NCBI RefSeq assembly: GCF_001194135.2
Contig: NC_068982.1
Coordinates: 132,079,325 to 132,143,324, forward strand
DNA from: Octopus bimaculoides
Taxonomy: Eukaryota
Reading direction: 5' to 3'
Length of the DNA: 64,000 nucleotides
The notes beneath the pieces were generated by a model. It did not search any database, was not told the origin of the DNA, and saw nothing but the letters and a program-made list of their open reading frames with translations. This document shows positions 15,978-44,209 of the stretch, one piece after another. Each line of letters starts with the position of its first letter. Position 1 is the stretch's first letter. Position numbers and translations under genes: made by a program.

Positions 15978-17794
15978 CGTGCGCGTGTATGCAAAAGCAT
16001 CGTCTAATGTCATTACATTTTTCGACAATTTCATTTGATGTCATTTTCTATGCTCGTTGTTTTCTTCTACCGTCTGACTATTAAATGAATGACCATATCA
16101 AAGATAAAGGCAGTTCGTTTTGCATTTGGACTATAACACGGCTCGATTCACTTAACTCTCAAGAAAATAAGTCCTCGTTTATTTGAGAATATTATTGAGT
16201 TAAGTTGTTTTTTTTTATAAAAGTTATTTGGCTATTAGAATTTAATGTTCATGTTTTTTTTTTAACAAGTTAGTGAGGGAAGATATTGTACTTCTGACTT
16301 GTGCAGGACCCTTCCAGATAGGTGATATTAGTTCAGCCGATGCCAACCCAATCACTGCATGAAAATGTTACTGAAGAGTAAACTGAGGTTTGGCTGAACT
16401 TTTTACTAAAAACGTTTGCGTAGAAATAAACTTTGAAAAAGCAATGGATATTTCATGTTAGTACATCCGTCCTTCATTCATAACACAGAGATGAATAGCC
16501 AATATTTTATAAAAAGAATGTGATAGGAAGCATAAAATCAAAGTATTCATAAATTAAGATGAAATTAAATATTTATTTTCTTTTGTAAATATAAAATCTC
16601 TAAACAAGTAGAGAGAGTTGTCTGATCGAACAGCGCCTGCAGTTGGATTAAATCACATAGAGAGACATTAAATACAAATCATATAAAAAAGCTATTAAAT
16701 AAATAATATGAAATACATAATTTGATATAATAATGATTATATTACAAAAATATAAATATGCTTGTTAATATAAAAAAAATTATTTGACTGAAATAAAAAC
16801 AAAGCAGATCATATGAAAAGCCAAATCTTTACAGATCTCGTCCACGACTCAAATTTAACATTGCAGACCACTACAATTTATTTCTGCGCTTTTATTTGTG
16901 TGTATGTGAATATACCTGTATGTGTGAGTGCACATACTCTACTCTGCAACACTTAAATTTGAAAAAGTATGTCTAATATCCTTCTCAAATATATTGAACA
17001 AAACTAAAAACTAATGAAATGATACTCATTCATGAGTCTTCTATCGAAAAATTGACTCCCTATCCATTCAATCATCGCAAGAGTGGTCATGCAACAGTTC
17101 TTGACTCGGAGGGTCAGGCAAAATAATTTGCGTTATTTAATTACTCTCCTTTACAATGTAATTTAAATCTTTTTAAGGTCAACATTGGCTTTCTGGTTTA
17201 AAAAAATAGGTTCCCATCAAGAACTAGATTCACTTTAATCGACTTTACTCTGATACAAAACCTGTGGCATTTTTGTCAGTGGGAAAAGACATTGTGAAAT
17301 AACTACAACAGTCGGTAGAGTAACTGATACGAAAGGGTGTCAAACTAAATGCTCTGACATGTATAATTACGTTACTTTACATGAAATAAATGACTTGTAA
17401 TATTATTTTTTATTATTTAATTTCTGCTTTTAAATCCACCCGTAATTGACTTTGGTAAAAATATTACTGGAGATGTACAGCAGTTAATCAAATGTATTAT
17501 TTCAATTTAAAATATTCTACAAAATCAAACAAATTCTAAAGCCATCAGAAGACGGCAGAATGGCAGAAGCATTACGACACTTATCTAAATATTCCTGCAT
17601 TTCTTGCCGTTGTATTATCAGAAGTGTAGTGAGGCAATTTACCCAATTATTTTCCTTTACAAATTCATGGCTTGTGAGAAATAAAATGCATATTCGAGTT
17701 ACATATTTTATTAATAAAACAATTGTTTGTTGTTTGGTAACAATTGAGAAATGTCTAACATGACTTCATTTTATTCTTTTTCCAGACTTGAACC

Positions 17795-17864
17795 ATGAAG
17801 ATTATAATCCTGTTAAGTATTTTATTAATTCTTCTCCAGGCCTATACAGGAACCTCCAGACGAT
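17795..17864 (+). CDS. First coding exon of agatoxin-like (ICK/knottin) peptide precursor: signal peptide MKIIILLSILLILLQAYTGTSRR
   Basis: Branch-like CTAAC near 17755 and polypyrimidine tract ending ttccAG (17784-85). The exon starts at 17786 with 9 nt of UTR, then AACC-ATG at 17795, a hydrophobic signal peptide, and a perfect GTAAGT donor at 17865 (phase 1). Confidence 0.8.
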
Positions 17865-18096
17865 GTAAGTTATACAATTTTCTTCTCAATGTATACTATG
17901 ATGTAAGATAAAATTAAAACCACACGATGTTTATACTTTATGACTACAATTTCTCTCACTATTCGTCAGTTATTCATCTTTTATCCGATCTATTTATTTA
18001 CTTGTGTGTATATTGTGCACATGGGACTGAATGGGCATTGAATGAAAGGAAAATTAAATGAAAGCTGGTTAATCTACATATATATAAAATTGAGAA

Positions 18097-18183
<87 letters not shown>

Positions 18184-18988
18184 CCCTAAAACTCCAGAAC
18201 TACACAACCAATTTCATTCAAATTTTACACATGCCTTACTTAGGGTTGTGTTTCAGTAACAAAACATTTTAACTTCTTGCATACTTCCAGCCCACAGCAA
18301 TATCATATCTCCTCCACTATTTAAGTATTACGTGTCAAAAGTGAAACAAAAACACTCATGTCATTCGAACCGGAATCTCAAAAACATTGTCACCTCACAT
18401 CTCATTCTCATTTAAGTACTACGACAGGCAAATAAAAATTACTTGTATGACATAAAGCTGATTTTCCTTAGTTCAATTATTATGACGCCTGCTAAATTAC
18501 AGACAGTGTTTGAATATGTTCCCGTGGTACCTTTTTTTTCTCTTGGCTTGACGAATTACCACTAGTTTGAAAATTATTTCGATCTTCTATTGCTTTAGCA
18601 GCATACAAATGTTGCCTGCACCTGTTTTTGTGACGTTGCTAATTAGAAATAGGAGTGAAATACAAAAATTGTGACTTGTGTGCTATCAGTTTGAAGAATT
18701 GTGGTACGAGATCTGTTTGATCTGCAAGAGGTTTTGTCCGATGAAATCAAAACCTTTCTGGACAGTATCAATAGATAGATGGAAACGAATCCATTCTTCT
18801 TAAATATGACTTCATTGCTACGTATAACAATATTTAGAGCTCTAACTGCAGAAGACAACCCTAACTGCAGGAGACAACCAGAAAGAATATAAAATATCAA
18901 ATAGAAGGCGAATTTAGAAAATATTTCATCATTCATAGATCATAATACAAATGTATAAACTTTGTTACTCGCAAATATCTACCAATTA

Positions 18989-19135
18989 GTCTTTCCCATC
19001 GTGCTGAACACTAGCCCATGTGAAGCCCTGTAGTATGGAAACCTCTGCACACTAATACAGGACGAAAATAATTAGATTAATGCATTTGGAAGAAACATGT
19101 GGCGCAAAATTTAAGGAATATAAAGTTACAAAAGA
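18989..19135 (+). mobile_element. RTE-clade LINE fragment
   Basis: VFPIVL..*YGNLCTL..*INAFGRNMWRKI*GI resembles the RTE motif VFPI..YG.E.WTL..I.AFE..WR.IL.I. Confidence 0.5.
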
Positions 19136-19737
19136 GAGAGAACCCTGGTACAGTGTGCTAAAATGCGTCTGAACAACGGCTGCTTGAACAAAGTATCTTC
19201 ATTTCAAAGCATATAATGAAAAATATTAAATTTCACCTCTTTATTCAGAATCTTGACCACGAATAAATTTAGCGTGCGTGCTCGCACGCACACGTGTGTA
19301 ACTTATATATACGCATACGTATATATTTATACATATATAGACATATGGATGTATATGTAAGTACAACGCTGGGAAAATGGAGTACTCTATAGAAAAATTC
19401 TCGGGAATTATAAAATGATGACAGAAAAGCGATAGTAGTATATGCTAGAGAAAGTAGGAAATTAGAGGAACAATACCGTGGGAAGTGGCAGCTGATCAAA
19501 TATCCATCTCTGTCTCTATGATGTAGTTATTGAATTATTAGACTTGTGGTGGGGGCAACGATAGAGTCTTTTATAAAGAGATAAATATTGCAGAAAATGA
19601 GCTTTGGTTGTGTCCTTTATTTGAAGATATTGACTGAAGAGAAATATGGAAAAGAACGTGCGTGTGCATGCGTGTGTGAGAGAGAGCGTGAGACAGACAG
19701 ACAAAGAGGAAGACAGAGAGAGACTAACAGACAGATA

Positions 19738-19796
<59 letters not shown>

Positions 19797-22393
19797 TGTG
19801 TGTGTGCGCGCGCGCGCGTACATATATATGTTAGAAACAGCAACGAAATCTCCCATCTCTAAACAAATTATACCGTATCTAAAAATGTCATATTGGCCAT
19901 TGTAGTTCTGGATAAACTAAACCTGACAAAAAAAGGTGTAACAGAAATGACTGACGCATTTTCGATAATAGGTTCTCTCAATCGGGACTGAGATGGGGCT
20001 AAACAACAATGACAACTAATGCCCCTTTTTTCATTGGTTTATGCAACACAGATCATCTTATTATTTTTGCTTAAATAATTTCCGTTATCTGATGGGAAAT
20101 TCTGTTGTATATTTTATATAAGAGACATATGGCCATTTGTACAAAAGGCATTACCTAAAACGTTTGTTAGTCAAGACTGACTCTCCAATGACATCTCAAG
20201 AGTTTCTGTCAGGGTGCAGATATAAGCTGGGTTTCTTTTCTACATCGAAGACCAGTACGCTAGGTAGTCATTCCTCTTCATTCCGGTGGTATGGGTCGAC
20301 GCACTTCGGCATCATTAAACGACTTCACCAAAGATGTAAGAAAGTAAACAGCTGAAATAAATACCACAAGACATTTTGTCTAATGTTCCTGACAAGTACT
20401 TTATGTTACCAATCCCAGAAAGATGGTGGAAAAAGTTAACCTTGCGGAATTGGAACTCAGAACGCAAAAACCTGAAGCAAACACTGCAAGACATTTTGTA
20501 CCATTCTCTAACAATTCTACTAATCCTTTGCCATAGACTGCCATGAAGATGATTAGCAAGGTTAATCTCGACAGATTTTGAACTCGGAAACTAAATGCCC
20601 GAACAAACAACGCAGGCTATTTTCCTACTATTCTTACATTTCTCTCAATCTATCGCCTCGATAAGCGCCATTAAGTTTTTTTTTAAATTTCGGTCAAAGG
20701 CTTTTACTTTTCTTTTTCTTTTGTATTCGTAAATGAATATACGTCTACATCACCAAGTGCTCTGAAATATTTACATTAATAACTGTTTTGTGTTAAAGTA
20801 TAATTTACTAGCATCTGCACATCATGTATAATTCATGTGTTTAAATTAAGTATTTAACTGTCTGTATTTTTATTAGATGCAAATACCCCTATTTCAGCAG
20901 AAAAAGAAAAAAAGAAAAATAGGAAGAAATATATTCTTTAAATACTGTCTTGTTGTTTTTGTTTGTTTCCCGTTCGATATCATATGAGTTTGTTTTCTTT
21001 TTTTACAAAACCAGTTTAAGTTATGTAATTATTGTTTATATTTCAATAAACAACAGTAGTTTTAGATAAATTCTGAAAATACTTCTGATTCTGATTACTA
21101 ACTTCTGAAGTATTCCAAATAACGTTGGTCTTTTTAGAGAAATGTATAATAGACATGGTTTTTGTCGTTTATTTTAACAATAATTATTTAAAGCATTTTC
21201 CGATGAAAAGAATTTGTAAAGATATCTTGAGAAATGTATCTTACAACAGAGTATAATATCTCATAGCTTATATTATAGATGCTATTATTTTTCTCTTTTT
21301 GCGGTTCGATAATTTCGTAATCTAGCTTTGTATGTTTTAGTTTGCTTCAACAGAGATAAACTGTTTATTCACAGCAATGCTATCTAGCAACAGATAATAT
21401 TATCTGAACACCATTTACTTCTCAGGTCACCAGTATACATGCACATACACTTGTTTTCCTTAAGCTTTCACTCTTATTATTTCTAACTATACTTTAACTA
21501 TTTGTGCAATATCCATACCTATATTTATTTTGAATATAAATACAATTTTTCCCATGTTTTCTGGCCTTTCGTTGATCCGATTGTTTATAGGTTTCTATTT
21601 TGCTGTAGGCAGTATTTCTTCAGTATGGAAGCACAAAAGAAATAATGTCCTTGTATCGAGATCAGCCTTTTGCATTGCGTATCGATACAACATTAACATT
21701 GTATCAACACAATAGTATTGATTGCGTCACCACAAAAGATAATACTTCAGCCGAAGAAAGATTCTATATTTGAAAAGCAAATATTCTAATATCAGAAATT
21801 CTGCTTAAGAGTGGGAATAAATTAGCTATATCTCGTCCAGTAGTGTCAACCTAGTTGGTCGTAGGGAGCAGTTAAAGACTTCATTGTTCAATATACTTAG
21901 GAACCATTGAAATTTTACTTCAAACAACGCCATTACAAGAGCATGTAAGGCAACGCACTGCATATTAACATAACTTTTGTCAGTTATCCGCTGCTTTCTC
22001 TTGTTACAGTAGTAAGTTCAATACTCCATAGTATTTACATACAGACAAGGCACATGGATATTTGGAATTTAAATGTCTTGTCTCTGTTAAGGATACTGTG
22101 TAGTGATAGTAACATAAACCGTTCACAATATAATCTCGCCAGTTGCCGTTCCTGAGATAAAAAATAATCAATTTGTAGCCGTTAGAAAATATTCGGATCT
22201 GCTTCCGTTTGATTGTTTCTCGTTCAAAAAGTATATGCAATTTTCATTATCAAGAATAATTTGCAATATGCCGTTAATACTGGTTTCAAATTGTGAGTAC
22301 TGAATGGATGTAATCGATGTAATCAACTTGCTCCTTCCCCAAGCATTTCAGGCCTTGTACCTATACTATAAAGGAAGATTACTAGATAGCCCA

Positions 22394-22583
22394 GGGCGGC
22401 AAGCTAGCAGAATCGTTCATACAGAACAAAATGTCTAGTAGCATATCGTTCGTCCGAGTTCAAGTTCCACTGAGGACATTCCTGCCTTTCATCTTTTTGA
22501 GGTCGATTTTTATCGAGCACTGGGATCGTTGTAACCCAACTCCCCGAAATTGCTGGCCTTGTGACAAAATTTGAAATCAATAT
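22394..22583 (+). mobile_element. SINE family 2 (a 3' fragment also lies at about 22290-22370)
   Basis: ggcaagctagcagaatcgtt..ccgagttcaag..gcctttcatc..gaggtcgat..gctggccttgtgacaaaatttgaaatc. Confidence 0.8.
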
Positions 22584-22975
22584 TATGTAGTTCATATTAC
22601 TTCTAAGTAAATAATTAGCTCGCAAAATAATTAACTTCAAAACACAGAAATATATTTTTAGATTAGCTGACCATATTTCTTCCAAGGGGTAAAAATAGGA
22701 AAGTTATTAACTTTCAAACCACCAAACATTTTAATTTTAAAATATTTCTTACATAAATACAAGGCTTCGGGTTTCTGTGATAAACCAAATTTACATATTT
22801 ATATCTTCGCAAAATTATATGTATTTTAACTAAAGTAGCATTTTTGTGGCTTAGTCATCAGATGAAGAGAGCAAGATGCATGAGATTTTTCTGGGTCTCG
22901 CAGATTGGTGGGAGAAAGTTATCCCGGATACATGTAGCCGAGTGGATTATACTAAAAAAAGTCAAGGATCAGTTG

Positions 22976-23215
22976 GTAGCCAAAATCCAAACCATTATTA
23001 GGGATAAATTTCGAAGGGAATGAAAAAGAAAAACATTTACCATCTATCTCCTGGACCATAGTTTCAAGCTCTAAATTAGCAAATAAAATAATTTAGTAAT
23101 TATTTTATTTGCTAATTTAGAGCTTGAAACCATTGTCCAGGAGATAGATGGTAAATGTTTTTCTTTTTCATTCCCTTCGAAATTTATCCCTAATAGTGTT
23201 TTGGATTTTGGCTAC
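22976..23215. repeat. Near-perfect 240-bp palindrome (118-bp arms, 4-nt loop TAGT)
   Basis: 22976-23093 pairs with 23098-23215, with only four non-Watson-Crick positions. TA lies just inside both ends. Confidence 0.95.
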
Positions 23216-24541
23216 TCCTTCTAGCATGCTTATGTGTTTAAATGTACACTGTATTTATATAAATAATATATAGTCTATTGACTAGTTTTCTACATACTAG
23301 GCCACTGGTAGTAAAAAATTTCTAAACTTTTTTCTTACCCTGATATTTATTAATTATATCTGTGTATATGTATATATATGTGTGTGTGTGTGAGAGTGGA
23401 TGTGTGTGTGTGCGCGTGCATATATNNNNNNNNNNNNNNNNNNNNNNNNNNNNNNNNNNNNNNNNNNNNNNNNNNNNNNNNNNNNNNNNNNNNNNNNNNN
23501 NNNNNNNNNNNNNNNNNNNNNNNNNNNNNNNNNNNNNNNNNNNNNNNNNNNNNNNNNNNNNNNNNNNNNNNNNNNNNNNNNNNNNNNNNNNNNNNNNNNN
23601 NNNNNNNNNNNNNNNNNNNNNNNNNNNNNNNNNNNNNNNNNNNNNNNNNNNNNNNNNNNNNNNNNNNNNNNNNNNNNNNNNNNNNNNNNNNNNNNNNNNN
23701 TATCATTATTCTCCAGTCTTGTTATATAATATTTGATATCATGGAAAAAGAAATTATTAAAATATAGTTTTAGGTTAAAAGTTTTGAAAAAATAAAGAAA
23801 ATTATTCCTTACATTGTTTGCTGATCATGATTTTCTGAAACATTGTTTTTTAATGATTTTTGTTTCTTTTCAATGTTGGGAGCTATGTGTAATAACAGAC
23901 TCTCACTTCTTCATGAATGCATTGCATAAATTCTCTTTCTTTACATTTACTGTACTGCTTATCGGTGTAGAAATCTTATTATAATGGAACGTTGAAAATA
24001 GAATGTGAATAGACGAATATCTTATAGCTACTGAAGGTTATCCTTTTTTTATGGAAAACCAAATCTCATTTTTACGATGAAGCTCTTCATATTTCATTAC
24101 AATCAATCCAACATGAGTTGAATTTCCTATGGCTTGAACTGCATTATATTTGCAATGTTTAATGAAAGAAATTAAATGCCTAATTTCTCTTCTAGACTTC
24201 TTAGTTGTTCAACAATAAGAAGAATAATTTCCTTTGTATTATGATGTCTGTTTATCAATGGAGACATTTTAACAATACCATCTCTTACTTTATTTTATCA
24301 ACTTACTATTCTTTCTGAAATGTTGCTAGTTTATTTGTAGAATTCAGAATGATTTCATTTTTACTGTACAAACTTCAGCTACAAATCTGAAATTCATAAT
24401 AAAAATTCACAAAGTTGTTTTTGATTAGCTTCTTCAACAACAAAAAATAAAGCTGTTTATTCAGATGCCATGCACACTGCAGAATACCCTTCCTGCTGGC
24501 AGCCATCTCACTTGCTAGCAACTATGGGTTTTCATATAATG

Positions 24542-24625
24542 AAGAATCTATGGTGTGACAAAACATATCTATACAAATTTTAAAATAAAGAATCTATGTT
24601 GTGACAAAACATATCTATACGAATT
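24542..24625 (+). repeat. Tandem duplication, 46-bp period
   Basis: aagaatctatg(g/t)tgtgacaaaacatatctatac(a/g)aatt occurs twice. Confidence 0.9.
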
Positions 24626-24969
24626 ATCTCAAACAATAACTTGCGGTATGTATATTTAGGTTTATATCAGAAGAATGATTTAATCTTTTCTTACAAAGAT
24701 AGTAGGTATACTCTTGGTAGGTTAAAGAAGAACATGGCAAAATACTTTCGAACATTTGGCGAGCTAAATCATCATTACGATAAACCTCTCTCAGTTAATT
24801 TCTTAGATGTCGTAATAAAACTTTGTACCAATGTATACAAAACATATAAAAAGACACAAAGAGAAGTTTATCTGCATGAACACACCATGTGACACTTACC
24901 AGCTGTCTTCAAAACCTTGTAAGGAATATTAGTAGGATATGAAAGTTTCAAGTAGGAAAATATCAGGAG

Positions 24970-25119
24970 ACACAGGTACAGCTGGGCGGTAAGAAGTTCG
25001 CTTCCCGACCGGGTTCAGTCACACTGCGTGTCACCTTAGATAAGTGTCTTCTACTATATCTTCGGGCTGACCAAAGCCTTGTGAGTGGATCTGATAAACA
25101 GAAAGTGAAAAGAAGCCCA
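24970..25119 (+). mobile_element. SINE family 1, 5' half
   Basis: Homology to 8639-8785. Confidence 0.8.
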
Positions 25120-25123
25120 CAGT

Positions 25124-25212
<89 letters not shown>

Positions 25213-25704
25213 NNNNNNNNNNNNNNNNNNNNNNNNNNNNNNNNNNNNNNNNNNNNNNNNNNNNNNNNNNNNNNNNNNNNNNNNNNNNNNNNNNNNNNNN
25301 NNNNNNNNNNNNNNNNNNNNNNNNNNNNNNNNNNNNNNNNNNNNNNNNNNNNNNNNNNNNNNNNNNNNNNNNNNNNNNNNNNNNNNNNNNNNNNNNNNNN
25401 NNNNNNNNNNNATATATATATATATATATATAAAATTAGAAAATGGAGAATAACATACATTAACCAAGACATCAATAAGACCACATTTACTGCTTGTTTG
25501 TTGATACAAAGCAAGACATAACAAAGCTAACAGCTGTTTCTGATCAAAATTCCCAGAATGCTGTCTATACATAAATGCGAGAATAAAATTCTTCATCTTC
25601 ATAGGGCATTCGAATTAAGGCAACCGATCGTCATTAGCGTGAAAAGCAAGAGCATACACTATAAACAGAAGGGAGAAGGAAGAGGTAAGAAAACATGGTT
25701 TAGA

Positions 25705-26949
25705 GAAATAGTGTAAGTGGTTAAGGGGAGGCAACAGGTCGCGGTAGGCCAGCAGTTCAATGAAAACAAGGAAAACAAATATGGCTTCAAAATTGCAGAG
25801 GGAAAACTTTGCCCCTTTTCCTTAGCTTAATAAATTTATTGATGAAAATGAGTTCCTCGTCGATAATGATATGGTTGAGTTGATGCGAAACCATATTTGC
25901 ATTCTTAGACAAGAATTATCCCTATATTTTCTCAATTTGCAAAAAATTGAGCAACTTTACTGCTTCTGAACAATCCATTTTCCATATCTTTTGCTGATCT
26001 CCCTTCCGAGGACACAACCATGCAGGAGCAGTTCATAGAATTGTTGAATGACAGAGCTGCAAAACAGATCTTTCGTGAAATAAGTTGTAATGACATGACT
26101 TTTGGATTCAAATAGCACAGCTTTATCCAGATATTTCAAAGATGGCACTGAAATATCTGGTTCCCTTCACGACCACTTATGAGTGCGAGTTGGTGTTTTC
26201 GGGTCTTCAATCGATAAAAAGCAAACAACGAAACAGACTGAATGTTGCACACGATACAAGGGTTGCTTTATCCAGAACCCAGTCAAATCAAATATAGATG
26301 AGTTGGTAAAGCTGAAGCAAATACATTAATCCTCCTTTTGAACAGGTTTAATGATTTTTCTTTAATACATCTATAAAACAAATATCCTATCTTCTATCGG
26401 TTTTTTGGCAAATATATATGCGAATAAAGGAAAGAATCGGATAAAATATACAAAGAATTAAGCGCCACGTCAATGCCATAATCCCTTTCTTATACCGGAC
26501 CTTACTTGCCACCGAACTTAATATTTGTGAAAATGGGTTTGAAAGCATAAATTACTAATGAATAATTAAAGTTTGGTATAGTTAACTGTGGCCCTACTTC
26601 ATAGCCTAAAAAGAAGCAAAATGTTAATTTTTTCATATCATTATTCCAACATTTGGTGTCATGTTAGTGTCACTATTCTTATTTTATGCTTACAACTAAC
26701 ATTTATATTTAATCACATTATTGAGGTTTTGTGCATTCAACTACTTAAGCCTAATAGTAGTATAATCGCGAACATTTTGCATTTGATTAATCACTTATTC
26801 CTGCCAAAATAGGCCGGGGACCACGATGCCTCCACAAAATGGCCAAGGAACCGCGAGGCCTCTAAAACATGGCCAGGGGACAGCGAGGCCTCCAAAAAAT
26901 GGCCAGGGGACCGCGAAGCGAAAATTTTGAAAAAGGTTGAGAACCACCG
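25705..26949 (+). mobile_element. 5'-truncated hAT Charlie/Buster-type transposon remnant
   Basis: Frameshifted C-terminal transposase (..QEQFIELLND..FW..YPDISKMALKYLVPFTTTYECELVFS..IKSKQRNRLNV..) ending at TAA 26327-29. Right TIR AGGTTGAGAACCACCG (26934-26949) is followed by GTCTAAAC. No left TIR. Confidence 0.85.
26812..26920 (+). repeat. GC-rich subterminal minisatellite of the hAT element (about 4 x 29-30 bp)
   Basis: Units resemble GGCCAGGGGACCGCGAGGCCTCCAAAAAAT. Confidence 0.8.
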
Positions 26950-27374
26950 GTCTAAACCATGTTTTCTTAGCTCTTCCATCTCCCTTTTGTTTATATTCTA
27001 TGCTCTTGCTTTTCACGCTGATGAAGATCGGTTGCCTTAATTCGAATGCCCTATGAAGATGAAGACTGCATTCTGGGAATTTTGATCAGAAACAGCTGTT
27101 AGCTTTGTTATGTCTTGCTTTGTATCAATAAACAAGCTTTAAATGTGGTCTTATCAATGTATTGATTAATCTATGTTTTTCTCCATTTTCTAATTATTTG
27201 TATTGGTTCCTGATGAACGTTTTGTTTATTCTATTGTCACCTGCGCTCGATGTATATGGTATCCCTGCACACCAGTGCCCGGGGATAAACCAGGTAACGG
27301 ATACTGATAGTACATACGTATATTTTATCCCTCGGTCGGTTACTACAACTGCTAACTCTCTCTCTCTCTCTCTC

Positions 27375-27447
<73 letters not shown>

Positions 27448-27635: not shown

Positions 27636-27724
<89 letters not shown>

Positions 27725-27726
<2 letters not shown>

Positions 27727-28198: not shown

Positions 28199-28249
<51 letters not shown>

Positions 28250-32336: not shown

Positions 32337-32385
<49 letters not shown>

Positions 32386-32549: not shown

Positions 32550-32603
<54 letters not shown>

Positions 32604-32946: not shown

Positions 32947-33019
<73 letters not shown>

Positions 33020-34182
33020 TACGTCAGAATGTAACTTGATTGTTTTTCAAGTGTATCTGTTTTAGCTGTATTTATATATCATTCTATCATTGCTGCAAAA
33101 TGGCGGTTTCTTGTGATTTTTTCCCCATTTCTATGAGAAAGGTTTTTGCCTAGAAAGGAAAAAGTGATTTTAAATCCCATAATTTACAATTATCCTATAT
33201 TGATTAATGATAAATCCATATTAATCTTTCCGATTCAGGCCTATTAAACTGAGACATACCCGTTGTTTTACCGGATGTCATTAAAGACAGGATCCTCTTC
33301 ATTCTGTATTGTTTATTTTGTCTAAAAATACCCATCTTATAGCTTGTCTGATATAAGTATTTCCAAAACTCATGCAGGGAGTTCTTATCTGCTAATTACT
33401 TTATAACCTTAGCTGATAGAAGTCCTTAAACTCATTGTATTATGTGTGTGATAGCATACCAAAATGGTGATTTCAAATATTATACTTTAATTTTATTTTA
33501 CTTTCTTCTCGTCTTTTTATCTATTTATTTTTTATTTAGAGTTGTGTACGATAAATTAAGTACCCGACAAAATGCCTTAAAATATTGAATCACATCACTT
33601 CCTTACCAAGAGGTCCTTGACAGCTCTATCTGTTTCCTTCGTTCTCTAGTCCCTAAGTTCTCACTTGATTTCTGTCATGCCTGAAAATACATTTTCTCTA
33701 AGCTAAGACTGTGTAGCCAGAGAAAATATGGTTATGTAATAGTTTCTTCTAAACTTCCTTTTATTCTTTAGTTAATGTATTTTACTTCATTATTTGCATT
33801 CAATTGTTTCTCGTGGGAAGGCTTTATTCCTATGTTAACGTCAAAAATATTTCGTTCTTAAGATTGAGTTTTAGGCTTTTCAGCGACGCTGCCATTTTAT
33901 TTATTAAATTTTTTTCTTTTTTCATTCTCTGCTTTGATTCTTTGCAATTGCCTTTTCAGGTATAAGTCCCGTGGGAGCTTTTCTTGCTGTCGTTTTAACA
34001 AGGCTTTCTGAAGCTTAATTAACACTGAGATTTTGGCTTTTACATGATTTCTGTTCCTTAACATTTCTCCTCATAACTATTTGTTACATCAACCTCTTCT
34101 TCCATTTTGAAGGCGTATTCCACATCAACAAAACAGCTTTTTCTTTTGCTCTGTTGCTGTTATTATTATTAATAGATGTTGT

Positions 34183-34214
<32 letters not shown>

Positions 34215-34234
34215 TCACCCTTTTATTATTATTA

Positions 34235-34271
<37 letters not shown>

Positions 34272-34272
<1 letters not shown>

Positions 34273-34363
34273 CTCGGCGGAATTTGAACTCAGAACGGAA
34301 AGACGGACGAAGTACGCAAAGCATTTTGTCTGGCGTGCAAACGATTCTGCCAGCTCAACGCCT
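34272..34363 (-). mobile_element. SINE family 2 head embedded between trinucleotide arrays
   Basis: cctcggcggaatttgaactcagaac..acgattctgccagctc. Confidence 0.85.
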
Positions 34364-34364
34364 A

Positions 34365-34415
<51 letters not shown>

Positions 34416-34584
34416 AATAGTTGTCTCAGTGAATTTTCTTTCCTTTTTTCCCCTTTTATTTTTCGTTTTCTTTTTCAATTTTTTTCTTTTTTTTCTTCTT
34501 TCCTTTTTCTCTGTCTTTGTTCCCCTTCTTTTTCTATTTGAAATTAACAATCCGGTATGTTTATTGTGATAGCCTACCAATGTT

Positions 34585-34678
34585 AACAGTGAGGTTCTTT
34601 GCCCTAGGTGCTGGGAAGACACTCGGCAAGAAATGGAAACAAAATTGAAAAACATGTCAATAATAATAATAATAATAA
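34585..34678 (+). mobile_element. Probable LINE 3' terminus with (TAA)n tail
   Basis: tgccctaggtgctgggaagacactcgg..aaaacatgtc followed by (AAT)n. Recognised only by its resemblance to R4-type ends. Confidence 0.35.
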
Positions 34679-36909
34679 CGAATCGATAATTATTAAACTT
34701 CTTGCATAATCTTTGAAGAAGTAAAAAAGAATGGAATAGAATTACAGTTCATTGAATGATGTTCTTTATTATATACATATATTCGAGAGGTTGAATATCT
34801 AATTTGGAAGACGTGGACGTTGGGTTTGTAATAGTATGAAACTTTATGCCGTATGCTTTACAAATAAACAATCTGGGAGCATTTCCGGATGCAATGGAGG
34901 TTTTGATGTGGAAAATTGGTGATGATATTAGTGTACTTAGATCTGTTCGCTGAAGCATTTCACACATTACTGATAATTTGAGAGAAAATCGTATTTCTGT
35001 GCGAGATGAAGTGAGGCTGTTTCTATTTATCATTTGGTCACGGAAATAGAGAAAATCATAGACAGTTTTTAAGTTATCCTAGAAAAGAAGTTTCTGAGAT
35101 TTTTTATCAAATTTATTAGGTTTAACCTTCATGTTTTAGTTCTTTGAAAACAATCGTAGATGTTAAACTGTGATCGGAAGAGTATTGCAGAGAAATATTG
35201 CGGCTGGGAGACAGAATAGAGTAAAGTAATTTTAATTAAATATTCTTGATTTACTGCATAATGTTATCACCGACTTTATCCTTTGGTTTTCATGCAGAGC
35301 ATGTCCCGAGACAATTTTCTAACTAGCCTTTAAGTATTAAAGAATCTAAAGAAAGATATACAGTGTAAATGTCAGATGGAGTGAATAATATAGTAATCTC
35401 CTTATTATTAGAGACCGTTGTCAGAAAGCCGGCTTCTATTAAGAGAATGCTGTGTTGTAACAATAAAGGAGACGTAAAGAGAATTCTGTGGAAAATAATT
35501 TCAACATATATTCTGTATTATAACGAGAGCTGTATGAGGTTTATAGTCTACAGTGGAGTTTATATTTTATTGAGTCGGTTGATTGATTTATATTCTGCAT
35601 CAAACTGTATGTTAAGGATGGAACAGTTTGAATTATTATGACATAAGCAATTTCAAATACATTAACTTTATAGTCTAAATAATAATTATGTAGTCGATCG
35701 CATTGGCCAGTCATTCAAAGTCAGTCCAATGTAATTCAGAATTCAACCATTTCATTAATCCTAAAAGAACCAATAACTGTCAACTGTCTTCAAGAGAATC
35801 GTGAATATAAAAGCAAACACAAATTTAACTATGAGTATATTGTATGTATTTGTTCGCCGTGTGATTAAAGCATTCGTGGCATCTTAAGCAAATCATCCCA
35901 CAACAACTGCTAAAGTTCAGGCGAAACCCACAATAAAGTATTTCTCCCACATTTGGTATAATGTCGCTGCTATACAGACTTACAGCTTAAACGACAATCA
36001 AATAAAGCAACCCACTTAACTGGCGCATACCGATCGCTGTGCCACAGGCGTGATATCTCCTCTCTCTGCCTTTTCTATATCTACTAGAATTTTTATGGAG
36101 GTGAATGACATCATGTCACTTTCTTTCAGACGGTCCCATTTAATTCATCCCTCTTCTCATTCGCCACATTGTGTTTACACTTCAGGTTCTAGCTACTACA
36201 TCCGGTCCTTCATTCTCTCCCTATAATTTTCTTCTGTGCTCATGGTATTTGTTCTGCAACCGTTGACAACAGTTTAAGTAGAACGTTAACTTTCTGGTTG
36301 ATCTTGAAGAGCCTATGCAACAGTGTCATTTTCCATAGATTTCGAAGTTAAATTGGGTCGACATGAACTGAGTGAAAGACCATCAGACGAACTGCACTTG
36401 CATTCGGGTGGCACACTTAATCTCACAGCATTATTGACACAACCGCCCCCTCCTTGGGTATTTTTAGTGAAGTCTATTATGTTGAATTGACAGAATCGAT
36501 AAAGAGCCAGATATCTTGCGGTTTTGTTTTGATTCATTAAATTCTGAGTTCAAATTAAATTGAAGGAAACATTACCGTTCATCCATCTGGGATAGATAAA
36601 TAGAGTAACAATCAAATAATGAATCAAAGTATAATCAATTGTCTCTACTTCCTCAAACTTTATATTTGGGCCTATGTTAGACTTTATGCTCCAAGCATTC
36701 AGAACGTCTCCAGACAATATCTCTTAATGTACTGCTTATTATTCCAGCCACATAATAAAACTTGGTTAACTCCTTCCCTTGTCCTATCAGTTTTGGAGGA
36801 TGTACAAAGCCGTCATGAGCAGTTCTTTGCCTTTTTTAAGCAAGTTATAATATGCGCACATGTCTTTCAACTTTAGTGGAAGAATTGTCAGATACTCCTA
36901 CTTTCTCAC

Positions 36910-36956
<47 letters not shown>

Positions 36957-37672
36957 TCTCTCTTCTCTTTCTTTCACATTCAAATTTCTTAGGGTATAAA
37001 AACAAAATTGGAAATATAAAAGAATATGCCAAATAACCGAAAAATATTTTCCAGTTTGATATATGAATATGTTTTATGTGTTATGGAAATAACGATTTGG
37101 TAGGCTTTTTCAATAAAACATCAATCATTTTACATTCCTATAATTACATTATACTCCATTATACTATATCATACAGATGCATTTTTATATGTACGTACAG
37201 GCATATATATCTCACTTTTTCTTTTCTGTTCTTTATATATATACATATATATAAGTAAATTTGTGGGTGTACATACTTTATTAATGCATTAATGCATGCC
37301 AATGTCTATAAATATCTGTTTATCTCCATGTCCACATCTATATTTGATATGAACAATAATTATATAAGATTGATTATTCAAAAGAGGAAATTATTCTTTT
37401 TATTTAAATACCAAAATCGGCAGCCCTTAATTCTAAGCAGCTATGGATTTTACTTGAGGAATCATGCTATATCGAATATTGGTAGGAAATTGTTAGTATT
37501 CTTTCATTACTGATTTTATATGCGTATTCTATGATGAAAGAAAACTCAACGACAGCAACTTTATTTTTCGCGTATTTTATCTATTTCTAGATTATTTTCT
37601 AGTAAGAACATAAAATGCTATTACATGTATATATATATATACGTATATATGTGTGTGTGTGAGTGTGTGCGT

Positions 37673-37703
<31 letters not shown>

Positions 37704-37723
37704 NNNNNNNNNNNNNNNNNNNN

Positions 37724-37784
<61 letters not shown>

Positions 37785-38775
37785 AAGACAGAAAGAGAGA
37801 CAGAGAGTGAGAGACAGACAAACAGACAGACAGATAGATATACATAGATAGATTTATATATATATAAATATACATACATGCATACATACAAGCATACACG
37901 TATATAAGGGGTTAGAGTGTATCAGTATGGACATATATTACGTGTACGTTTGTATTGTATATATACATATACATGTATATATTATGTATGCATGCATAAA
38001 TATGCATACATGTATAATATATATATGTATGTGCGAGTGTCTTAATACACAATACACACTAAATACATGATTTATTGTGTACATCAGTCTTTTTTTCTCT
38101 CCTTTTTCCTTCTTCTGGATATTTCTCTTATCTCATCTCATTGTCATCCTTGTTTTGTTATTACTTCATCGTTTTAGTCGTCGTTCATCAGATTTGCGTG
38201 CGTGCCTTTCGTTACTATTGTTCCCAGCACACTGGCGTAGTTGCCTGTAGCCCAATACTCTCTGTTCAGAAACATTATCACGAGCAAAGAAGATCAACCA
38301 TCGTAACTTAAAGTTTTACAATGGCTTCTTTTAGATTTTTATCGTTCGTGACGAGTTAGCGATCAGAGTTCTGTCAGAGTTAGCTACGGGCACTAAAGGG
38401 GAATAAAAAAAAAAACATACAGCTAAGCTGTTGCGAACCACGTAATATGTTTTAAAGATTTCTTTTCAATCCTCACCACTGTTAAAATCTCGACCTCTAT
38501 AAGCACTAGTTCCTGGGGCATCGTTAAAACCTCGGTTGCTATAACTATTGAATTCTGGAATCTGCAATGTCTGTCGTCAGTAGGTTAATATTTCTATACT
38601 TCATTTTTATTTACATAACTGGGTGTTATTGAATAAATAAACATGATGTACTTGATGATAGTTGTTAAGTTAGCGTTAAAATATTCACTGCAAAGAGTAT
38701 TATAAAAACAAGCTAGAAATAATTATGCAGTAAGATGGAGATAGCAATGTTTTATGCATTTCCTAATTCTGATTT

Positions 38776-38982
38776 GATTTCAAATTTTGGCAGAAGGCCA
38801 GCAATTTCAGGGAAGGAGTAAGTTTATTCCATTGACCCTAGTATTCAACTGGTACTTCTTTTATCGACCTCGAAAAGATGAATGGCAAAGTCAACCTCTG
38901 TGGAATTTGAACTCCGAACTTAGAGACGGACGAAATGCCACTAAGCATTTTGCCCCGGCGTGCTAACGATTCTGCCAGCTTA
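38776..38982 (-). mobile_element. SINE family 2, full length
   Basis: Head-to-tail reverse-complement homology to 46525-46740. Confidence 0.9.
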
Positions 38983-39621
38983 TCGTCTTTATTCAGTTAC
39001 TAATATTAAATATTAAATGTCAACGAATTGACTAATAACAAAAGAAGGGAAATAGAACCAGTATGTGTGTTTCTTATTGGCATAATGACCTTCCCGAGAT
39101 ACTATAAGATGTGTATCAATACATGAGTTCATATCAAGAAACTTCTGAAAGAAATACAAAAGCAAAATATCAAATTTTTCCTTAAGTACGATAGAGTTTT
39201 CGTGTATATATACTGTCACGGATTGCATTACGATGCATCAGTAGCCGTTTGTTATATTTTCAGTCTGAAATAGTTATTAGCAGACGTATATGTCTATATT
39301 CAAATATTTATTGTTAGCTTATAATTTATTCATATTATTTGAGGTAATTCTTGTCTATGAAAGTTGTTAACATCCCCCTTAAAATACTGTTGCAAGAAAT
39401 AGAAATCATAGGTCTAGCAAAGATTTATAGAAGATGATCTTCTGGGAATGAAAGACTGCGTGTAGTGTTTCTTGTGGAGATTAAGGTGTGAATACAATAT
39501 CGCTAACGAGAGAAGGGACGAATGAATCGGAATTCAACATGAAATAAAAATGATCTGCAATGACCCCTATTCTAATAAATGTTGTAAATACCTTGACCGT
39601 TGGACTGAATTTACGCATAGA

Positions 39622-39673
<52 letters not shown>

Positions 39674-39767
39674 GTTAATGTTTAATATATACAGTGAATA
39701 AAATTATTAATACTTTTCGGCATAAACCTGAATTTTGACAGACAGATAAACAGACAGACAAACAGAC

Positions 39768-39829
<62 letters not shown>

Positions 39830-41069
39830 GACGTGAGTTTCTTGTTTTCTCGTCCCATTTGTATGGGTCTATTATAAACAGAGAGGAAGCGTGTTTTCTT
39901 GTGTTTTTCTCCGTTTGGGGTAGAAAATGATTTTGCACTTTCTTTTTCCTCAGGCAAAACATAACATCTACTGAAATGATAATAAGGTGAGGTTCCCACA
40001 AAGATAAAAGCAACATTTATGCGGCCATCAAAAATAATTCCGTATATTTTTTAAATATGTACAGCTGAAAAAAAAAGAACGTAACTCTTAGTTAGATACT
40101 TGTTTCTTGACATATGCAAGTCAAAATTTTAATAACAGCTTCCCAAAAAAAGAAACGCAGAATATTGGTCGATTATTAAGAGAAATAGCAAAATCAGAGA
40201 TGTTTTACGTGAGATAGTGCTTTTAAGTTTGAGGAAAACATTCAGGAACTAGCAAGAAGGCAGGTAACCCCTATTTTTCGCAAAATAGAGAATACTTACA
40301 AAACCAATGCCCCGGTTGGCATGTAGATGGCTGTGGTTTCATTTCATTTACCGGAGTAGGACATATGGAGGCGTGTATCTAGTTTACAAGACCGAGAATG
40401 AGATGAGGAGATTGGCTGAGTTGTCGCATTATTGCGAATGCAAAGGTCACAGCCAGAAACATTGATATAACATTTATCCTTAGATCGTTACTACCTTTGC
40501 AACTCAGTCGGAGCAGTTGGAAAGAACGGAGATAAAAAGAAATAACATGCGGTGGGATTAGAACTGTATGGTCATGCAAGTCTTAATGAACCCTGCTCAC
40601 TACCTACTAATCGCAAAACAATATTCTGGAGTTGTGCTTTATTGTGAGTAGAAATGTAAGACATTAGACTGTGATGTTATGTAGAAAATCCAGTTGCTAT
40701 ATGAGATAGTAAGAGCTACTGGAGTAAGGCTAGACAAAAGTGAAAAACAATCCCTAAAATGAAAACAAAGAACGGGAAGAACAAAATATAAGAAATTAGC
40801 CATAAACAAGGATGTATAAGACACATGAGGAAGAGATCCTTCCCATAGGAGACATAAGATTTACGATACGCTAAACAACGAGTTTCTGATAGAACTTATG
40901 GAATGATTTAAGATGATGAGGGTTATGCGTTGACTCAGAAGAATGAAATAGGACAAGAATTGAAAAGATCCTCAAATGATAGACTACTTGTGAAAGGATA
41001 TCGATAGTTTGTTACAATATGGAACTAGCCTACACATGACACGTAGAATGTCATATACACATATAGTTT

Positions 41070-41336
41070 ATAGTAGCCCTGTAAAGGCGCGTGGATTAGT
41101 AATTGGAGTTTGTTATATCCTTGAGCAAGAGACCTTATTTCACGTTGCTCCAGTCTACTTAGCTGGCCAAAATGAGCTGTACCTGTACTTCAAATTCTGT
41201 CACACTGAAGATCCCTGATAACTACGTTAAGGGTACGCGTGTTAGTGGAGTGCTCAGCCATTTGCATTTCATTTGCATTAATTTCATGAGTAGACTGTTC
41301 CATCGTTTCGTTGAGCTGAAATACCTGTCGTCGTAA
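41070..41336 (+). mobile_element. Third SINE type with V/CORE-like and Nin-like segments
   Basis: TCCTTGAGCAAGAGACCTTATTTCACGTTGCTCCAGTC and CTCAGCCATTTGCA..TTAATTTCATGAG. Domain naming is from recall and is tentative. Confidence 0.5.
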
Positions 41337-41638
41337 ATGATGAAGTACCAGTTGATGTAGTAGCCCCAGTATCTAACTGGGGTTACTATAAATGCACGTA
41401 AGTATGAAAGACAAATTTACCTTGATGAGGTTTGTATGGGAAAATAAAAGGGCTGTAACTAAATAGCACAAAAATTTGATCCGACCGTGTACCGATTTTA
41501 CCAACTACCATCCTTTATCTAAAACATTGTTGATGGGTTTCTATTGATATTTTTATTTTTTCCTTTCAAATAAGTTTATCCCCTGTACTTGAAATCATAA
41601 ACTACCTAAATGTATTGTTTTGGGATTATATTTTACAG

Positions 41639-41690
41639 ATTATGCAAGACATAAATTGGAGGCATTGGCTCGATATCAAAGCCACCGACG
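41639..41690 (+). CDS. Second coding exon (propeptide, (Y)YARHKLEALARYQSHR(R))
   Basis: ttttacAG acceptor (41637-38) and GTACGT donor (41691). The 52-nt exon is open when entered in phase 1 and exits in phase 2, matching the exons on both sides. Confidence 0.75.
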
Positions 41691-42794
41691 GTACGTACTT
41701 TTTCACTTAATTCATATCAATCTAAAAGTACTTAGATTTGAAAGCTTACATGTTTTACCACAAAGTATATTTTTAAAATAATTTTCTCTCGACGTAGACT
41801 ATGATTTCTCTGGTCATAAACAGAGACTTAGCAACTATTTGTTAAAGAACTGGTGGGCTCTGTGAAACAAATGGTAAGCTCTTGTTGAAGATGCCACTTA
41901 AATAAAATCTTTAGAGAAAGCTTTTGTTATATGCCAAAAAAAAGTTATTTTTATATTTTACGAAAGCATAAAAGAAAAAGAAAATTTAATACAGTACAGT
42001 GTTTAGTTTTCGTCCTCTTAGTTTTGAGTTCATATACAGGGTTTCGCATAATAAGAGATACAGATTTTATTTGTAATTTACAAGAGTGCGAGTAATGCTT
42101 GTCTGGTATTCCATCATTAGTAAACATGCTTGTTTAAACAATGTTCCATCACTATGAGACACCGTGACCGGGTCGACCGTATCTTTCATGAAACAGATAT
42201 AAGTAGTTTGCAGGAACAGTATGTTTCTCTATCTCTCTTGAATATCACTTTGAATAAAACCAAAACTCGCAGATGCTAGATATAGTAATGCCAAACGTTT
42301 CATCTGGAAGAATTATAAATTTAGCTCACTGAAATTTACGATTCTAAGATGTTCATATGATATTTTCTAATCAAACATATGATAGGAAACGAGAACTTAT
42401 TTGAAACCATGGATCTCTTTCTGGCTAATATATGAGAGAAATAGAATTTTCATCTAGATTGGACGTCATTTCGTCGCCAATAGAGTTACTACATTTGATA
42501 GCTTTCTCTAAAGTTAGGAAGCAACCGCTTTCTTATTGCAAATTATATTTTGTGTATTGCAAATTACATTTGGCTTTCGTTGACTCGAAACAAGCTTTTC
42601 GATCTGTATCGAAAAATGAAATATATTTTCCAGCTGAGCCATACTAGATTAGCGACTGAAGTTAACCTACCATTTCATGGACGAAATCTGTGTTTGTATC
42701 ATCTAAGTGTGTGTATGTGTGTATATTCGTGGATAATTTTACATGCTTTCTTATTTGGATATGTGTATGACTATGTGCGCGTACACACACACAC

Positions 42795-42826
<32 letters not shown>

Positions 42827-42836
42827 NNNNNNNNNN

Positions 42837-42871
<35 letters not shown>

Positions 42872-42965
42872 AGCGAGTTAGAGAATGTTTATGGAATAGA
42901 CGTTGTTATGGGGGTGGGGATCGACTATCATTCTTTTTTTCCAAGCTAAATAATCTTTTCTTCTT

Positions 42966-43614
42966 GTCGCACAAGGCCAATTATTACATCGATCTCAGTA
43001 CTCAATTCGTATTTAGTTTATCGACTCTGAAGGAATGAAAAGCAAAGTCGAACTCGGCGGAATTTGAACTCAAAACACAAAGACAGACCAAATGCCGTAA
43101 AGCATTCCGTCCGGCGTTTTAATGACTTTTCCAGTTCATCAACTTTACGTTAGATAATCCTTTCTACTATAGGCACAAGACATAACATTTGCGGGGAGAG
43201 GGTAAATCGATCATATCGATCCCAGTACTAAACTGGTACTTAATTCATCGACCCCGAAAATATGAAAAGTAAAGCCAACCTCGGCGGAATTTGAACTCAG
43301 CACGTAAAGACGGGTGAAATACCGCTAAGCATTTTGCCCGGCGTGCTAAACATTCTGCCAACTCGCCCCCTGACTTTATGCTAAATAACGAAAAGAATAA
43401 TATACATCAGTTCACCAGTAATATCGATTCCAAAATTTGGCACATGGCCAGCAAGAGGAGAAGGATAAGTCGATTACATTGATACCATTGATTAACTGGT
43501 AGTTATTTTATCGACCCTGAAAGGATGAAAGGCAAAGTCGACTTCAGCAGAAATCGAGTGTAAATGCCGGTAAGCATTTTCCCGGCATGCTAACGATTCT
43601 GCCAGTTGCTGCCT
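42966..43614 (-). mobile_element. Three consecutive SINE family 2 copies (about 42966-43142, 43160-43370, 43425-43614)
   Basis: Each carries the cgac..gaa..gatgaaa.gcaaagtcga core and the aagcatt..ccggc..ctaac.attctgcca head. Confidence 0.9.
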
Positions 43615-43660
43615 TAATTTCACCGGTAATATCAAAGCATTGAATAGCACAACATTGATA

Positions 43661-43772
43661 GAGTGTCAGACAATAATCTAATGTGTCAGACAATTATATT
43701 TAGTTATGTCAGACAATTAGTCAGACAAATATATTTAGTTATGTCAGAGTGTCAGACAATTATATTTAGTTA
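43661..43772 (+). repeat. Irregular minisatellite with five GTCAGACAA copies
   Basis: Units TGTCAGACAATTATATTTAGTTA interspersed with shorter derivatives. Confidence 0.85.
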
Positions 43773-44052
43773 TATACCTTTCCAATTTAGGGTTAAACCT
43801 GTCCAAACTGTCTTTGATCATTCCGGCCTTGAAATAAAATATCTGTTAAATATGATGGGTGATTTAGACCCTGCTCTAAATTTTGTACCTGTTTGTGTTA
43901 AATGTATTCAAATTTTTAATCTATTCCCAAATCTCTGGTTAACTTTATTTATAGTGTGTGCACATGCGCTCGTGTGTGTGAGTGTGTGTGTGTGTGTGTG
44001 TTAAACTACTGAACAACAATAATCACCAGCATTTCTCTTTTCTTTTCCATAG

Positions 44053-44209
44053 ACGAAAACAAACCGAAAGAACGTGCTCCAAATGGCGTGAAACTTGCCA
44101 GCCTTGGTCCAACAGCAAAAGCAAGTGCTGCGATCCTAGCAGTTTAGTATGCAAGTGCAACCTTTGGATGCAGAATTGCAGATGTGTGAACAAACTTTGG
44201 GGTGGATAA
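44053..44209 (+). CDS. Terminal coding exon: agatoxin-like knottin domain RKQTERTCSKWRETCQPWSNSKSKCCDPSSLVCKCNLWMQNCRCVNKLWGG*
   Basis: Strong acceptor (catttctctttcttttccatAG). Cys framework C-x6-C-x9-CC-x6-C-x-C-x6-C-x-C. The CxCNLWxxNCRC motif is characteristic of agatoxin-like peptides. C-terminal Gly, stop TAA at 44207-44209. Confidence 0.9.

Follow-up and report, generated by a model that had tools for sequence, protein, structure and literature searches.

CCWamide is the family name used in spiralians, and the orthology of these peptides to the arthropod agatoxin-like peptides (ALPs) has already been shown (Thiel et al. 2021, PMC8557429). In the same study, spiralian CCWamides and arthropod ALPs were united by a hallmark of gene structure: three exons, and a basic cleavage site interrupted by a phase-2 intron. 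The CCWamide genes of Lottia and Crassostrea have three exons, intron phases 1 and then 2, and a split basic site. Neurons of the gastropod Berghia contain CCWamide mRNA widely and in abundance. Cephalopods are also represented in supplement 26 of Thiel et al. 2021 (PMC8557429), where a sequence named "octopusVulgaris.32202" stands in the CCWamide block beside 'CCWamide_platynereis_dumerilli' and where a CCWamide of the pygmy squid Idiosepius notoides is included.

The locus analyzed here lies in a 64-kb stretch of Octopus bimaculoides DNA (the window; all positions refer to it). Its 92-aa product is identical to octopusVulgaris.32202 and also, over all 92 aa, to RefSeq XP_036370989.1 of O. 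sinensis (LOC118768477), which has the same three coding exons, bears no functional name and is listed as an "uncharacterized protein". The preliminary description of this DNA had presented the gene as unrecognized, and that claim is not supported in view of these two records. The main text and part of the supplements of De Oliveira et al. 2019 (PMC6425005) hold neither this sequence nor the family name. The gene and its protein are already known; only the fault in the gene model of this assembly is new.

Gene structure and its support from Octopus sinensis

The three short exons in the window make up a genuine octopus gene, which encodes a small, secreted neuropeptide precursor with eight cysteines. 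Its parts are as follows:

17795..17864, + strand: coding exon 1, 70 nt, with the ATG, the signal peptide MKIIILLSILLILLQAYTGTS, a dibasic RR and position 1 of a Tyr codon that is completed in exon 2
17865..41638, + strand: intron 1, 23,774 nt as assembled, including 1,919 N in 7 gaps
41639..41690, + strand: coding exon 2, 52 nt, with the propeptide YYARHKLEALARYQSH, an R and positions 1 and 2 of a further R codon that is completed in exon 3
41691..44052, + strand: intron 2, 2,362 nt, with one 10-N gap (42827-42836) and a (TG)n run
44053..44209, + strand: coding exon 3, 157 nt with the TAA, beginning with position 3 of the R codon from exon 2, followed by RK (completing RRRK)
44357..44362, + strand: candidate polyadenylation signal, the first AATAAA past the stop (a pattern match only); if used, it would make the 3' UTR about 170 nt long

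All three exons are bounded by canonical GT/AG sites. The exon 1 donor is GTAAGT (phase 1), exon 2 has the acceptor ...TTTTACAG (AG) and the donor GTACGT (phase 2), and the exon 3 acceptor is ...TTTTCCATAG. The start ATG is at 17795, whereas position 17786 is the base after an AG (17784-17785), 9 nt upstream of it. When the exons are joined, the coding sequence of 279 nt is translated into 92 aa: MKIIILLSILLILLQAYTGTSRRYYARHKLEALARYQSHRRRKQTERTCSKWRETCQPWSNSKSKCCDPSSLVCKCNLWMQNCRCVNKLWGG. In exon 3, RRRK is followed by the linker QTER, the eight-cysteine CCWamide/ALP domain (TCSKW...CRCVNKLW), a C-terminal GG and the TAA. The three exons, the splice signals, the phases and the 92-aa frame given in the preliminary description were thus borne out when the sequence was read again, and the signal peptide, the basic sites and the cysteine spacing C-x6-C-x9-CC-x6-C-x-C-x6-C-x-C are present, the last exactly as claimed.

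The window as assembled contains eight N runs of estimated length between exon 1 and exon 3, including those at 37704-37723 and 42827-42836, which could mean that the exons adjoin only through a scaffolding artefact and that their order is not true of any one chromosome. All of these gaps are intronic, so the reading frame is not at stake. Moreover, the same exons are found in the same order and on the same strand in the O. sinensis chromosome, in a stretch of 57 kb without any N, and every gap in the window is bracketed by colinear, same-strand blocks in that stretch; the gap at 42827-42836 is spanned by a single alignment. The probability of such an artefact is therefore negligible. What cannot be trusted is the length of the gaps: the flanks of the gap at 23426-23700 are about 0.9 kb apart here but about 10.3 kb apart in O. 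sinensis, and the span from ATG to stop is 37,071 nt in O. sinensis against 26,415 nt in the gapped window, i.e. about 10.7 kb longer.

The rest of the window was searched for related and unrelated genes. A tblastn search with the mature peptide matched exon 3 only, and no paralogue was found in the 64 kb. No other gene was found in the window either, every ORF of at least 130 aa being a translation of an N run or a microsatellite.

Family assignment, predicted fold and processing

The octopus locus is very probably the orthologue of the CCWamide/ALP neuropeptide gene. The agatoxin-like family had been proposed in the preliminary description together with a profile search, and this proposal is upheld by a profile match above the cut-off, by family-invariant residues and by the diagnostic exon and phase structure. 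Residues 49-88 matched Pfam PF02819 Toxin_9 (spider toxin) with 23.5 bits against a gathering cut-off of 21.3 (E = 6.7e-5); the same model also matched 11 of 15 CCWamides. In an alignment with 14 published CCWamides, the eight cysteines, P58, W59, N77, W79 and N82 are invariant, and W90, which precedes the C-terminal Gly, is nearly so. The octopus precursor has every residue that does not vary among 15 published CCWamides. The eight cysteines and W79 are also invariant among 17 database homologues, W79 being the aromatic residue between Cys6 and Cys7 that characterizes the CCWamide/ALP family. As in other members, the precursor consists of a signal peptide, a propeptide, a basic site and a C-terminal cysteine-rich peptide. 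The putative signal peptide was assigned on hydropathy, residues 3-14 forming a hydrophobic core (Kyte-Doolittle mean about 2.8-2.9). [quoted passage not shown]

The spiralian CCWamides of Lottia gigantea (XP_009055999), Crassostrea virginica (CCWa-1) and Platynereis (PMC8557429) have the same short-precursor layout. The core CxCNLWMQNCRC is common to Lottia and octopus, and the P-W after Cys2 is invariant across CCWamides. However, the octopus precursor differs from other spiralian CCWamides in several respects. Its cleavage site is tetrabasic (RRRK), and its propeptide of 16 residues is bounded by a second dibasic site immediately behind the signal peptide. The C-terminus of the octopus and cuttlefish-type sequences is ...LWGG, in place of ...WG, ...WGR or ...WGK, and intron 1 is about 24 kb or more, against the 3.6-4.9 kb measured for Lottia and Crassostrea. 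The eight-cysteine framework with its CC doublet and two CxC motifs is also that of arthropod ALPs (Sturm et al. 2016, cited in PMC8557429) and of the Toxin_9 spider venom peptides. With the octopus peptide they also share a CRCNLWG.NCRC-type core, a putative C-terminal amidation signal and the three-exon, phase-2 gene structure, but the first inter-cysteine loops of the octopus peptide differ from theirs in sequence and its C-terminal tail is shorter.

A knottin is defined by disulfides I-IV, II-V and III-VI that form a knot around a beta-hairpin. In the AlphaFold2 model of the 49-residue peptide, which has a mean pLDDT of 63 (low confidence), residues 29-33 and 40-44 form a hairpin. When this low-confidence model was compared by Foldseek, the best matches over the full length were the spider toxins Hc3a, omega-Aga-IVB and Magi4, with TM values of 0.43-0.60 and E of at least 2.8, which is not significant. 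Sequence similarity to solved spider toxins was marginal throughout (E 0.25 to 1.8): a search of solved structures with the single sequence gave spider-toxin matches at E 1.4-1.8, and the best spider toxin found with the CCWamide profile had E = 0.25.

The processing steps can be proposed from established prohormone biology and homology. On entry of the precursor into the secretory pathway, its signal peptide would be cleaved near Gly19-Ser21. Prohormone convertases would then cut at RR (22-23) and RRRK (40-43), with the basic residues trimmed by carboxypeptidase, and the domain of about 49 residues would fold into an inhibitor-cystine-knot-like core held by four disulfides. An amidated aromatic C-terminus is expected of the family, with W-Gly standing before a stop or a basic residue; octopus and cuttlefish-type sequences keep W90, but GG-stop comes after it. 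Because of this ...WGG ending, standard amidation would be expected to put the amide on the Gly after the Trp. The amidating enzyme, using the C-terminal Gly, would thus convert ...LWGG to ...LWG-amide, whereas in most other molluscs a Trp-amide is predicted. The mature product would presumably be released by neurons as a signalling molecule. The 16-residue propeptide, YYARH(K/R)LEALARYQS(H/L), is framed on both sides by dibasic sites. We suggest only tentatively, as a rather doubtful possibility, that the cephalopod CCWamide is processed differently (to a Gly-amide) and that the propeptide is a second bioactive peptide.

Conservation and the venom alternative

The coding exons differ from those of O. 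sinensis at 3 of 279 nt, all in exon 3 and all synonymous, with no non-synonymous change. In the introns around them, identity is about 86-92%. Exon 1 together with its 20-nt flanks is identical in all 110 nt, and exon 2 is identical too. A wider comparison was made with a cuttlefish-type contig of 1,312 nt from SRR3011300, whose sequence cluster includes Sepia pharaonis CAE1286437.1. This contig contains no intron: homologues of the three exons follow one another directly, and both junctions lie where they do in octopus. SRR3011300 is assumed to be an RNA library, and the contig was read as a transcript because 1.3 kb cannot hold a gene of at least 26 kb unless it is spliced. The cuttlefish-type protein is about 86% identical to that of octopus. 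Non-synonymous differences were counted at 15.8 of 219.8 sites, but synonymous sites are saturated and dN/dS could therefore not be computed for this pair. The propeptide (2 of 16 residues substituted between octopus and cuttlefish) and the putative knottin domain (5 of 45) are about equally conserved. Strong purifying selection acts on the 92-aa protein among cephalopods.

This conservation bears on whether the peptide could be a venom or salivary toxin, in which case the posterior salivary gland of the octopus would have taken over the CCWamide/ALP scaffold, in parallel with its recruitment in spiders. Venom recruitment of this scaffold is recorded in the literature, the domain matches a Pfam family named 'Spider toxin', and its best full-length structural neighbours (E of at least 2.8) are four-disulfide spider ion-channel toxins. 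However, orthologues are present in non-venomous molluscs of all classes, and the octopus gene appears to be single-copy, without a paralogue in the 64-kb window. Venom genes typically diversify rapidly and duplicate. The absence of any amino-acid change among octopus species and the identity of about 86% to cuttlefish are the opposite of this pattern and count against a toxin. A venom role is thus considered very unlikely, and a conserved CCWamide neuropeptide is the preferred reading.

The Octopus bimaculoides gene model and its correction

In the preliminary description it was stated that annotation misses this gene. This is correct for the present assembly, in which only the last exon was captured, but not for O. 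sinensis, which has the full model. The O. bimaculoides entry A0A0L8HXQ3, labelled "Agouti domain-containing protein", keeps the last exon and adds a false first exon, which was placed by tblastn with 100% identity over 28 aa at 38735-38817:

38735..38817, + strand: spurious first exon of A0A0L8HXQ3, MEIAMFYAFPNSDLISNFGRRPAISGKE, without a signal peptide, with a GTAAGT donor in phase 2, repeat-derived

The resulting product of 79 aa (38735-38817 plus exon 3) might be taken for a real or alternative form of the protein, as an ATG and an uninterrupted frame are present in its first exon, the donor GTAAGT matches the consensus and is in the right phase (2), and the frame is also open in O. sinensis. 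Such a product would nevertheless carry a disulfide-rich secreted domain without a signal peptide. The exon is part of a dispersed repeat, of which at least four more partial copies lie in the window (43426-43545, 46739-46615, 43215-43282 and 22580-22541). Its divergence from O. sinensis is also like that of the introns, with about 10% of nucleotides different and 8 of 28 residues changed, against no residue change in the three true exons. Furthermore, the O. vulgaris, cuttlefish-type and RefSeq sequences all use exons 1 and 2. It is extremely improbable that A0A0L8HXQ3 is a genuine product, and the three-exon precursor is retained as the gene model.

The (TG)n run at 43972-44001 lies about 50 nt ahead of the acceptor of exon 3. 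It had been proposed to mask the last exon, but it has no demonstrated part in the mis-annotation. The more general point of the preliminary description holds good: genes for very small peptides are easily mis-modelled when their exons measure 50-160 nt and their introns 20 kb or more. Among 5.8 billion proteins in the collection searched, only four cephalopod gene models were found (O. sinensis, O. bimaculoides, Sepia pharaonis and transcript contigs); the O. bimaculoides one has the wrong first exon and the Sepia pharaonis one, at 213 aa, is probably over-extended.

The practical value of these results is an annotation fix: A0A0L8HXQ3 should give way to the three-exon, 92-aa CCWamide precursor, and XP_036370989.1 could take the family name in place of "uncharacterized". 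The CCWamide/ALP family is an orphan, with no known receptor, target or physiological role in any protostome. Although it is no discovery of the present analysis, an animal with a large brain and what appears to be one clean copy of the gene could help to find the CCWamide receptor.

Gene structure and conservation of the three-exon locus

The three exons proposed in the preliminary description were reproduced with their coordinates, splice signals, intron phases and 92-aa ORF, and the product (MKIIILLSILLILLQAYTGTSRRYYARHKLEALARYQSHRRRKQTERTCSKWRETCQPWSNSKSKCCDPSSLVCKCNLWMQNCRCVNKLWGG) carries the cysteine spacing claimed for it, C-x6-C-x9-CC-x6-C-x-C-x6-C-x-C.

Coding features of the locus
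17795-17864, + strand: coding exon 1, 70 nt, ATG at 17795, GTAAGT donor
41639-41690, + strand: coding exon 2, 52 nt, pyrimidine-rich acceptor ...TTTTACAG, GTACGT donor
44053-44209, + strand: coding exon 3, 157 nt, acceptor ...TTTTCCATAG, TAA at the end
44198-44206, + strand: C-terminal codons W-G-G

The exon lengths give a CDS of 279 nt with intron phases 1 and 2. Exon 2 ends in ...CAC CGA CG and exon 3 starts with A CGA AAA, which splits the tetrabasic RRRK in phase 2. A (TG)n tract (43972-44001) precedes the exon 3 acceptor by about 50 nt.

A protein search returned XP_036370989.1 ("uncharacterized protein LOC118768477 [Octopus sinensis]"), which is 100% identical over the 92 aa. At the nucleotide level the exons differed from O. 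sinensis at 3 of 279 positions, all three synonymous, and the splice-site flanks were essentially identical; the surrounding introns diverged by about 10%. Furthermore, a 1,312-nt contig from SRR3011300, of cuttlefish type since a Sepia pharaonis protein falls in its 90% cluster, encodes an 86%-identical precursor and runs unbroken through both predicted junctions with no insert at either. Because 1.3 kb can hold the gene only without introns, we infer that this contig is a spliced transcript and SRR3011300 is RNA. Compared with its precursor, synonymous sites were saturated and only 15.8 of 219.8 non-synonymous sites differed, so strong purifying selection acts on the whole precursor. On this evidence the three-exon locus is a real gene.

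A pyrimidine tract and CAG (tttattctttttccag; 17770-17794, + strand) that stop 9 nt short of the ATG resemble a 3' splice acceptor, and an unannotated non-coding 5' exon may lie further upstream. The cuttlefish-type transcript has a 5' UTR of about 660 nt, too divergent for placement. No other protein-coding gene was evident among the ORFs of at least 130 aa in the 64-kb window, all 31 of which derived from N runs or from TA/TG/CT/GA microsatellites. Such microsatellites also adjoin most of the assembly gaps in the window.

Assembly gaps and colinearity with O. sinensis

Eight N runs are present between exon 1 and exon 3. Every one is intronic, so the reading frame is unaffected and only the exon order is at issue. 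The orthologous 57-kb stretch of O. sinensis (CM016860.1, 87.69-87.75 Mb; L002) contains no N at all, and the window aligned to it as a single colinear chain of same-strand blocks at about 86-92% identity, with every gap bracketed.

Gaps and gap flanks compared with O. sinensis
37704-37723: gap of 20 N, intronic, bridged by colinear O. sinensis sequence
42827-42836: gap of 10 N, intronic, bridged by colinear O. sinensis sequence
22821-23719: flanks of gap 23426-23700, aligned to L002 15660-26004

The last of these gaps is written as 275 N, with flanks about 0.9 kb apart in the window versus about 10.3 kb in O. sinensis; either its size is badly underestimated or O. sinensis carries a large insertion there. 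This spacing accounts for most of the difference in the ATG-to-stop span (26.4 kb in the window versus 37.1 kb in O. sinensis). Gap sizes in the window are not reliable. Downstream of the gene, 49026-50288 matches L002 51912-53222 on the opposite strand at 87.6% identity. Possible causes are a small inversion, the wrong orientation of a contig in one of the assemblies, and a transposable element whose insertions face opposite ways.

Family assignment and the proposed peptide

Residues 49-88 matched Pfam Toxin_9 ("Spider toxin", PF02819) at 23.5 bits, above the gathering score of 21.3 bits. [quoted passage not shown] 2021; PMC8557429). The CCWamide genes of Lottia and Crassostrea are arranged exon-(phase 1)-exon-(phase 2)-exon (supplement, PMC8557429), and the octopus gene has the identical phase pattern and split cleavage site. 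Alignment to 14 published CCWamides showed all eight cysteines, P58, W59, N77, W79, N82 and W90 to be invariant, and Toxin_9 was matched by 11 of these 15 sequences. A profile searched against 5.8 billion proteins returned 19, of which the named ones were all molluscan, with labels including "U8-agatoxin-Ao1a-like [Pecten maximus]" and "Ccwamide neuropeptide [Plakobranchus ocellatus]". The Toxin_9 score, the invariant residues and the gene structure thus bear out the agatoxin-like family call, and the gene belongs to the CCWamide/ALP family.

Beyond the gene structure, conservation and family membership described here, processing and release would follow general prohormone biology. The signal peptide would be removed co-translationally near residues 19-21, a convertase would cut at RR(22-23) and RRRK(40-43), the C-terminal peptide of about 49 residues would fold with four disulfides, its final Gly would serve C-terminal amidation, and the peptide would be released from neurons. 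Neurons of the gastropod Berghia express CCWamide mRNA widely and at high abundance. Neither a receptor nor a function is on record for any CCWamide or ALP (PMC8557429). An AlphaFold2 model from 18 sequences (pLDDT only 63) placed a beta-hairpin across the CKCN...CRCV segment. With this low-confidence model, the best full-length Foldseek neighbours were four-disulfide spider toxins at non-significant E-values, and sequence matches to solved toxin structures were marginal. A knottin fold is a plausible candidate for the peptide.

The octopus and cuttlefish-type precursors end in ...WGG-stop, whereas other molluscs have ...WG, ...WGR or ...WGK. The mature cephalopod peptide is therefore predicted to carry its amide on Gly, not on Trp, and "CCWamide" may be a misnomer in cephalopods. 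Octopus and cuttlefish conserve the 16-residue propeptide, which the two basic sites enclose, to about the same degree as the cysteine domain, but not the linker QTER. This may point to a second product or to a part in processing.

Deposited models and previous records

It had been noted that only the last exon appears in the annotation track. This is because A0A0L8HXQ3, the 79-aa O. bimaculoides UniProt model labelled "Agouti domain-containing protein", splices the genuine last exon to an incorrect first one.

First exon of A0A0L8HXQ3
38735-38817, + strand: 28 N-terminal residues at 100% identity, within intron 1

The exact match makes O. bimaculoides the most probable source of the window; the O. 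sinensis assembly is rejected as its source because non-coding identity is only about 90%. The phase-2 donor of this exon, GTAAGT, fits the consensus, but no signal peptide is encoded. The exon is part of a dispersed repeat, of which other partial copies lie at 43426-43545, 46739-46615, 43215-43282 and 22580-22541. Relative to O. sinensis it has changed as fast as intronic sequence, and 8 of its 28 residues differ. We therefore consider it a probable artefact of ab initio prediction. The cuttlefish genome model CAE1286437.1 (Sepia pharaonis), which shares the 90% cluster of the cuttlefish-type contig, has 213 aa versus 93-95 aa in transcript-derived precursors. It probably results from over-extension or fusion, which would make it a further mis-modelled version of the gene.

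The view of the locus as a hidden, unrecognized gene holds for the assembly's own annotation only. Supplement 26 of PMC8557429, a query collection of known proneuropeptides, has a CCWamide block starting near "CCWamide_platynereis_dumerilli" and ending with arthropod U8-agatoxin-like entries; it includes "idiosepiusNotoides.305035" and "octopusVulgaris.32202 MolluscaCephalopoda", the latter identical to the window product residue for residue. With this entry and the O. sinensis RefSeq model on record, neither the gene nor its family assignment is new. The literature search found no discussion of the cephalopod member in the text of the papers searched, and in databases the protein is unnamed or, in O. 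bimaculoides, misnamed. The practical outcome is an annotation correction at the O. bimaculoides locus.
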